From positions 1,405,672 through 1,469,671 of the forward strand of contig JAWQFM010000009.1 of NCBI GenBank assembly GCA_033442325.1: DNA of 64,000 bases, written 5' to 3'. The first letter of the stretch is position 1, and each line of letters starts with the position of its first letter. The DNA comes from Salpingoeca rosetta. Taxonomy: Eukaryota; Protista; Choanoflagellata. The notes beneath the pieces were generated by a model. The model searched no databases. It was not told the origin of the DNA and saw nothing but the letters and a program-made list of their open reading frames with translations. Made by a program: the position numbers and the translations under genes. Shown piece after piece: positions 10,101 through 11,296 of the stretch.

Positions 10101-11296
10101 TACATTGCCCCAGAGGTCTTCAGCCGCCGCGGCTACAACCACTGCTGTGACTGGTACGTCGTGCTTCTTGCTTTGTTTGCTCTGTGTGTTTGTTATTTGC
10201 TTGGCTTGTTTGTTTATTTCGCTCTGTGTGTGTTTTTTTTTTTTACTTTATTTGCTCTGTTTGTTTGTTTAGTCGCTACTCTGCTCCTGTGCTTCTGCTG
10301 TTCTGTACTTGTGTGCGTTTGTGTCGATTTCGTGTTGCATGTTTGGTTTTGCACCGACCATGCACATGTGCCTGTGCACTCACAGCCAACCTAACCTCCT
10401 TCTCCTCCTCCTCCTCCTCCTCCTCCTCCTCCTCCTCCTCCTCCTCCTCCTTCTCCTCCTCCTCCTCCTTCTCCTCCTCCTCCTCCTCCTCCTCCTCCTC
10501 CTCCTCCTCTTCCTCCTCCTCCTCCTCTTCCTCCTCCTCCTCCTCTTCCTCCTGATGCAGGTGGTCGCTGGGCGTGATCCTGTACGAGATGCTGGTTGGC
10601 TATCCGCCGTTTGTTGGGTCGTCACCCGACCACACCAAGGAGAAGGTGGTCAACTGGCGCACCACGCTCAAGATCCCGCAGACGGCCCACTTTGGCCTGG
10701 CCGCAAAGGACCTCATCATGCGCCTCTGCTGCGACGTCCCAGAGCGCCTCGGCACAAAGAACGGCGTCCGCGAAATCCAGGTACAGCGAAAGCGGGTGGT
10801 GTGGTGATTGTTGGTCTTCGTGGCAGTGGTGGTTGTTGTTGTTGTTTTTGTTGTTGTTGTTGTTGTTGTTGTTGTTGTTGTTGTTGTTGTTGTTGTTGTT
10901 GTTGTTGTTGCTGTTTGCATGGTTGCTGCTGTTGTAACATGAGGGAAGGAGTTTGTGTTGAGATGTCAGGTGCAGTTGTAACTTCGTCCACTTGGCTTTG
11001 TGTACCGTGGCACTCATCCCAAACCCTTCTTCCGTTGTCCCTTCCCGTCCAACCACCACCACCACCAGGAGCACCCCTTCTTCCAGGACGTTGCGTGGGA
11101 CCGGACGAACGAGCCACCGTTCATCCCCGAGCTGAGTAGCGACGACGACGTGAGCTGCTTCAACCAGGCAGCGCAGCGCGCCCCGCCGCCGCCGCCAGAG
11201 CAGCCGGAGACGCCCGAACTCTCGCAGATGCTTGAGGACAACCAGTACCTCTTCAAGTACTTCAACTTCCGCCGCTTCTGGACCAACCCCTCCTGA
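7163..11296 (+). CDS. wts: Warts/LATS serine/threonine kinase (NDR/LATS, AGC family), 5 exons
   Basis: Exons 7163-7297 (gccgccATG context), 7983-9458, 9711-10153, 10561-10780, 11069-11296. MOB-binding segment KFCIEQHF...ESEYLRLCR; GRGAFGEV; HVKAERDILADADNEWVVRL; HRDIKPDN; LATS-diagnostic HIKLTDFGLCTTFRFKHDSSYY and AHSLVGTPNYIAPEV; C-terminal FKYFNFRRFW. Confidence 0.93.
7871..7976 (+). repeat. (CA)n microsatellite abutting the 3' splice site of warts intron 1
   Basis: About 105 bp pure CA run followed directly by tgcAG. Confidence 0.95.
10395..10552 (+). repeat. (CCT)n intronic trinucleotide repeat
   Basis: Directly visible; ends just before the acceptor at 10560. Confidence 0.95.

Follow-up and report, generated by a model that had tools for sequence, protein, structure and literature searches.

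Which input controls a Warts kinase whose hydrophobic motif lacks the residue that Hippo phosphorylates? In animals, the threonine of this motif is the target of MST/Hippo and also of MAP4K kinases. A gene in the 64-kb stretch of Salpingoeca rosetta DNA analyzed here (all 64,000 nucleotides are referred to as the window) encodes a Warts-like kinase with an asparagine in that place. The answer depends on whether the gene is the true Warts orthologue, whether the asparagine is real and selectively maintained, and what the remaining parts of the kinase and of the Hippo cascade still permit.

Identity of the gene

The genotyping primers CC62 and CC63, designed for warts with a wild-type product of 773 bp (bioRxiv 10.1101/2024.07.13.603360, supplementary primer table), match the window exactly at 7839-7858 on the forward and 8592-8611 on the reverse strand, i.e. 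they span 773 bp. The exact match together with the product length identifies the gene as S. rosetta warts (PTSG_04961), the locus knocked out in that study. For the N-lobe region as well as for a choanoflagellate profile, the best named matches are LATS1, LATS2 or Warts throughout. Furthermore, the gene is placed on the LATS side of the split between LATS and NDR/Cbk1, with support values of 94/97 in a tree of 167 columns for the N-terminal piece, and of 99/97 in one of 171 columns, the motif column being 1 of them, for the C-terminal pieces; the exons were searched, aligned and entered into the trees one by one, as separate rows. A search of the whole genome with each exon revealed neither a second LATS-type gene nor a second tail exon. 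The original prediction of a Warts orthologue therefore stands on the primers, the best matches, the tree and the single LATS-type copy in the genome.

One other gene of the NDR/LATS family is located at G000:C25:150500-153400 (L023). It is split into many small exons, and its 3' end, including the position of the hydrophobic motif, falls within a run of N of about 1.1 kb. The existence of such a gene could mean that a paralogue with the canonical threonine, and not the window gene, acts as the functional Warts. However, the paralogue, as classified with four short exon peptides, carries the NDR-type segment AYSTVGTPDYIAPE and is closest to NDR/STK38-type proteins; the exon searches yielded no further LATS-type copy; and the giant rosettes described for S. 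rosetta come from knockout of the window gene. We regard this alternative as exceedingly improbable and rejected it on account of the NDR-type segment, the single LATS-type copy and the primer identity.

Gene model and conserved elements

The gene model has four coding pieces with 2370 coding bases in total, i.e. 790 codons. Its features in the window are:

7977-9458, forward strand: exon 1, with ATG 7977 as provisional start and a donor GT at 9459; low-complexity N-terminus, Mob-binding N-terminal regulatory region from about 9018, and kinase N-lobe
9078-9080, forward strand: arginine codon of the alpha-Mob helix, equivalent to Cbk1 R307 and LATS1 R660 according to the PDB alignment to Cbk1
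9165-9191, forward strand: ESEYLRLCR, Mob1-binding interface predicted from the alignment, with Glu 9165-9167 (E689) and Arg 9180-9182 and 9189-9191 (LATS1 R694 and R697)
9234-9257, 9291-9302 and 9345-9365, forward strand: N-lobe motifs GRGAFGEV, YAMK and HVKAERD, exon 1
9711-10153, forward strand: exon 2, with catalytic loop, DFG, long NDR/LATS-type insert and activation segment; a split Trp codon at its end
9828-9851 and 9888-9896, forward strand: HRDIKPDN and DFG, exon 2
10074-10115, forward strand: activation segment AHSLVGTPNYIAPE, Ser codon at 10080-10082
10561-10780, forward strand: exon 3, kinase C-lobe, WSLGVILYEMLVGYPPF...GVREIQ
11069-11296, forward strand: exon 4, opening after an AG acceptor; AGC C-terminal tail (EHPFF...), hydrophobic motif and stop
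11252-11281, forward strand: hydrophobic motif F-K-Y-F-N-F-R-R-F-W
11264-11266, forward strand: AAC codon for Asn, ten codons ahead of the stop
11294-11296, forward strand: stop codon TGA, end of exon 4

All junctions have the form GT...AG and restore VP/GGD, CDW/WS and EIQ/EHPFF, which are uninterrupted in relatives; the junction ...REIQ/EHPFF... at exon 4 corresponds to ...EIREHPFF... there. The N-terminus contains poly-Q and poly-D stretches, including a run of 13 Asp, and neither PPxY motifs nor a UBA domain were found in it. The catalytic core of an AGC kinase is complete: the Pfam Pkinase domain matches exons 1-3, and all the catalytic motifs given above are in place. In exon 2, an insert of 57 residues separates DFGLC from AHSLVGTPNYIAPE, an activation segment of the LATS type (S-L-VGTPNYIAPE, with the autophosphorylated Ser); the corresponding segment of NDR-type proteins differs (S-T-VGTPDYIAPE). 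The activation-loop serine is thus intact, as had been predicted.

The same can be said of the segment predicted to bind Mob. Over 152 residues, the gene aligns with the N-terminal region and N-lobe of yeast Cbk1 (E 1.5e-32), which points to a conserved Mob-binding region, and both arginines of the putative interface ESEYLRLCR are present, again in line with the original prediction. In LATS1, R694A and R697A abolish binding of pMob1 (PMC4511216); the LATS1 residue numbers used here for S. rosetta Warts are presumed equivalences. In Cbk1, R307 of the alpha-Mob helix has been proposed to pair with phospho-T743 (Gogl et al., PMC4428629), and its counterpart in S. rosetta is kept although the motif offers no phospho-acceptor. 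Likewise, Cbk1 E314, the partner of R746, is a Glu in S. rosetta Warts, and R746 and F747, called invariant in NDR/LATS kinases (PMC4428629), have their counterparts in the last two residues, R and F, of N-F-R-R-F. The Cbk1 residues were mapped with the published ranges of the N-linker (341-346) and of alpha-Mob (297-317) (PMC4428629).

The introns and the upstream region of warts (about 7600-7970, 9470-9640, 10160-10560 and 10800-10940) are packed with microsatellites, namely (TG/CA)n and triplet runs of the CTC/CTT and TGT types. These repeats give long spurious open reading frames on both strands (poly-L, poly-S, poly-C-V, poly-T-H). Immediately 3' of warts lies a tandem duplication of about 930 bp (11584-12056 and 12517-12988), whose copies are 99-100% identical, are spaced 932-933 bp from start to start, and each end in a (CA)n tract; small open reading frames within the duplication are duplicated along with the copies.

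The asparagine in the hydrophobic motif

The motif is encoded on the forward strand by TTC AAG TAC TTC AAC TTC CGC CGC TTC TGG, and sequence, reading frame and motif alignment agree on the asparagine codon, which confirms this observation. A six-frame scan of the entire window found no second match to the hydrophobic-motif pattern. In a phmmer comparison against PDB, exon 4 is recognized as an AGC C-terminal tail in which FKYFNF sits on the hydrophobic motif of S6K1. The asparagine, residue 781 of the 790-codon model provided that ATG 7977 is the start, is aligned with the positions of LATS1 T1079, Wts T1077 and Cbk1 T743, and a single base separates the two residues here (ACC to AAC). Mst1/2 phosphorylate LATS1 T1079, which has been described as required for S909 autophosphorylation (PMC4511216). 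With this residue, the S. rosetta motif is unable to take a phosphate at the canonical position, be it from Hippo or from any kinase of the MAP4K type.

Members of the LATS/Warts branch share the pattern F-x-x-[FY]-T-[FY]-[KR]-[RK]-F with the MST/Hippo-phosphorylated Thr. The S. rosetta gene keeps the skeleton and has Asn as the acceptor residue; the acceptor threonine is the one defining regulatory feature of the branch that it lacks. Hence, we class the gene as orthologous by descent but atypical in its regulatory motif. We found no mention of an asparagine at the Warts motif in the papers and abstracts that were searched; the alignments of Sebe-Pedros et al. 2012 (Cell Reports) may show it.

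Conservation among relatives

The AAC codon is common to the window and three genomic relatives (L008/P0004, L009 and L010), while the codons beside it differ synonymously among the four (TTC/TTT and CGC/CGT/CGG). Synonymous differences of this kind mark sequences that are independent of one another and subject to purifying selection. Asparagine-type tails also occur in P0121, P0122 and P0131; overall, F-x-x-F-N-F-R-R-F-W is invariant in eight sequences, which form one clade with support of 90/85 in the N-terminal and of 93/88 in the C-terminal tree (each tree comprising about 170 columns). In the N-terminal tree, this clade also took in P0001, a sequence to which the statement on the motif does not extend. 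The N-lobe identity to the window gene is 52-56% for the relatives of the clade, and 77% for P0001. Apart from Codosiga and the uncultured choanoflagellate UC4, the unicellular relatives are environmental sequences whose choanoflagellate origin is deduced from the trees only.

One could suppose that AAC is a sequencing or assembly error for ACC, or a polymorphism of the strain. The recurrence of the codon in three independent assemblies of relatives, and of the asparagine in further protein records, speaks against this idea, to which we give hardly any credence; sequencing error was rejected on the ground of the same AAC codon in the three genomic relatives. Moreover, the tail around the motif is barely alignable within the clade. 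Because the asparagine is held while the surrounding tail diverges, we read it as a selected residue: it appears to be both conserved and under selection, and an unconstrained position would be expected to drift.

The LATS-type proteins retrieved have Thr at the acceptor position in 211 cases, Asn in nine and Ser in one; Ala, Ile or Pro were not seen there in any of them. Further searches added little to this sample. The tail of P0004, too divergent for a word search, retrieved only P0004 itself and one close relative; a word search with the choanoflagellate profile brought up nearly exclusively LATS proteins of animals, each of them with Thr, and added no further named choanoflagellate; and a metagenome scan for F-x-x-F-[T/N/K]-F-R-R-F-W recovered only the P0004 contig, the 28 other matches being due to chance on unrelated contigs.

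A derived and recurrent substitution

A phosphorylatable residue is kept by the filasterean Pigoraptor (FIEFTFRRFW), by the unicellular-type sequences P0139, P0141 and P0366, and by all of the roughly 200 animal LATS retrieved, which have Thr. Within choanoflagellates, Codosiga hollandica P0270 has Thr (FSDFTWQRFW), and UC4 has Ser (FHGFSFRRFW). Because filastereans, animals, one Codosiga paralogue and UC4 keep Thr or Ser, the asparagine is derived within choanoflagellates and does not represent the pre-metazoan state. The alignment across choanoflagellates, filastereans and animals thus supports a residue that is conserved in the S. rosetta clade, but it does not support the suggestion that a rewired Hippo pathway was ancestral before metazoans.

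Two further lineages carry the substitution. In Codosiga hollandica, the sister paralogues P0269 and P0270 (100/98 and 99/97) have Asn and Thr, respectively. The two proteins (EukProt EP00042), 1323 and 804 residues long, are diverged Warts paralogues whose motifs differ at the phospho-site alone (FSDFNWQRFW and FSDFTWQRFW) and offer a natural contrast within one species. In the C-terminal tree, P0223 (LYEFNYRRFF) is sister to P0211 (MYEFTFRRFF) with 100/100, and this lineage branches among animal sequences; both stem from Logan/ENA assemblies and share the tail ...YEF[T/N][FY]RRFFDEAYSSE. By the tree topology, the change from Thr to Asn arose at least three independent times, by a single base in each case.

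Upstream components and published knockouts

Other elements of the canonical cascade, an MST/Hippo kinase with a SARAH domain and a Mob1 with the target threonines, are present in S. rosetta. The genome encodes an MST-like kinase with a SARAH match above the cut-off and an MST-like N-terminus at G000:C35, and, at G000:C20, a Mob1 orthologue in which K-T-F and E-T-L-G are retained; these correspond to Mob1 T12 and T35, which are phosphorylation targets of MST (PMC4511216). There are two Mob1-like genes, at G000:C20:591377-591550 (L031) and at G000:C1:1256878-1257100 (L030); the C1 copy keeps T-F-R-P-K-K and has Ser at the second MST site. In addition to these two, G000:C4:410176 holds a third Mob locus.

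According to the published S. rosetta knockouts, rosettes of the warts mutant have roughly double the cell number of those of the wild type (21.1 and 10.9), while those of the hippo mutant are of wild-type size (11.6 cells); both knockouts grow more slowly. As the original prediction had asked for a comparison of the two phenotypes, it can be stated that loss of hippo does not copy the rosette-size phenotype of warts. The shared growth defect fits a common pathway of hippo and warts. Therefore, the proposal that Warts is uncoupled from Hippo is supported in part: the canonical acceptor is absent and the knockouts differ in rosette size, but full uncoupling may not hold, given the slow growth of both. 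This shared phenotype, together with the retained threonines of Mob1, makes a route from Hippo through Mob1 to Warts possible.

Proposed regulation without a phospho-acceptor

The explanation that we favor, and consider somewhat more probable than its competitors taken together, is that the motif is a docking element which cannot be phosphorylated, that Warts is set by Mob1 binding and autophosphorylation, and that the input from Hippo is either lost or passes through Mob1. According to this model, the motif threonine would have been replaced by asparagine in the S. rosetta clade and fixed since then. Docking on the complex of kinase and Mob would be preserved by the aromatic residues, by R-R-F, and by the Arg and Glu partners of the motif in the alpha-Mob helix. 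Because skeleton and partners are conserved and the asparagine seems to be selected, we think that the motif most likely serves for docking and stays unphosphorylated throughout. Mob1 binding and autophosphorylation of the activation loop would then control the activity of Warts, with motif phosphorylation having no role, and Hippo could exert its influence only through the two conserved MST target threonines of Mob1 or through other sites. The model is built on what was observed of the sequence, of its conservation and recurrence, of partner residues that are all in place, and of a gene identified as warts; kinase activity in the absence of a phosphorylated motif, and the loss or re-routing of the input from Hippo, would follow from these observations. 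The difference in rosette size between the knockouts agrees with the model. Two points weigh against it: phosphorylation of LATS1 T1079 is reported to be essential in mammals (PMC4511216), so that the asparagine might leave a weak kinase, and hippo and warts knockouts are alike in growing slowly.

The first of these points leads to a serious rival, namely that the substitution is a partial loss of function, leaving a hypomorphic kinase whose basal activity is as low as in a Thr-to-Ala mutant, or a protein that acts mainly as a scaffold. Besides the described need of LATS1 for motif phosphorylation, a roughly five-fold weaker binding of the non-phosphorylated Cbk1 motif peptide (PMC4428629) would be consistent with such a kinase. 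On the other hand, the catalytic motifs and the activation-loop serine are all conserved, the phenotype of the warts knockout is strong and specific, and the lack of any variation of the asparagine across a deep clade, along with its independent recurrence, points to a selected residue and not to decay; we consider partial loss of function unlikely, yet clearly worth retaining. Still less probable, in our view, is that Hippo or another Ste20 kinase activates Warts through a nearby Ser or Thr of the tail, such as the threonine that follows FRRFW, as had been suggested. It is true that no Asn-type tail lacks a Ser or Thr in the four residues past the Trp, but Thr-type tails are equally rich in these residues, and the feature does not track the loss of the acceptor. 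The residue directly after the Trp varies (T, S, S, A, A, N or D), and no candidate in the tail is followed by an aromatic residue as at the canonical site (T-F in LATS; T-F and T-L in Mob1). A shifted threonine was rejected as unsupported, since the Thr after FRRFW is not conserved in relatives.

The docking model can be taken further, albeit tentatively. The asparagine may represent a selected state, always docked and never phosphorylated, that repeatedly unplugged LATS from all kinases of the Ste20 type; it would have been reached by the S. rosetta clade, by one of the two Codosiga paralogues and by the lineage among animal LATS. A Warts gated by Mob and independent of Hippo would then set the colony size of S. 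rosetta. We see this extension as conceivable but rather doubtful.

Comparison with known systems

With animal LATS1/2 and Drosophila Warts, the S. rosetta protein shares orthology according to tree and best matches, the same Mob-binding region, the type of activation segment and the skeleton F-x-x-F-x-F-R-R-F. It differs from animal LATS by the asparagine in place of the uniform threonine, by Trp instead of Phe after RRF, and by an N-terminus in which PPxY and UBA were not detected. Filasterean Warts (Pigoraptor, EukProt P0011 and P0026) are likewise LATS of unicellular holozoans, have a similar length and end in FRRFW, but Pigoraptor keeps the threonine. Other AGC kinases have lost the phospho-acceptor in a different manner: in atypical PKC and PRK/PKN, an acidic residue replaces it, and the upstream motif kinase is no longer needed. 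These kinases use Glu or Asp and thereby mimic the charge of the phosphate, whereas the asparagine of S. rosetta is neutral and provides no such mimicry.

The coHpo and coWts mutants of Capsaspora are said to behave alike (PMC10959527), in contrast to the S. rosetta knockouts with their different rosette sizes. Among structures, yeast Cbk1-Mob2 (PDB 4LQP/4LQS) matches the N-terminal region and N-lobe best, and the pairs R307-pT743 and E314-R746 of its motif have conserved equivalents in S. rosetta Warts; Cbk1, however, has a phosphorylatable T743 and belongs to the NDR and not to the LATS branch. A precedent is provided by ROCK, MRCK and DMPK, AGC kinases in which the hydrophobic motif serves for structural docking and is not under phospho-regulation; in arthropod ROCK, Asn even occupies the canonical phospho-site of the activation loop (PMC4686654). 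Yet these kinases belong to another subfamily, they retain the motif threonine, and their motif is buried in the dimer interface and not in a Mob-dependent slot.

Implications for the Hippo pathway

Among the closest relatives of animals, S. rosetta is the genetic model, and mutants lacking hippo, warts or yorkie are available. Because the asparagine is derived, caution is called for in taking the species as a proxy for the ancestral Hippo cascade. A conserved motif that cannot be phosphorylated is on offer as a concrete molecular reason for the difference in rosette size between hippo and warts knockouts. The repeated change from Thr to Asn hints at a general evolutionary route by which LATS kinases become detached from MST/MAP4K control. 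If the tentative extension of the docking model is correct, the textbook wiring from Hippo to Warts would not be a constant of the pathway among the closest relatives of animals.
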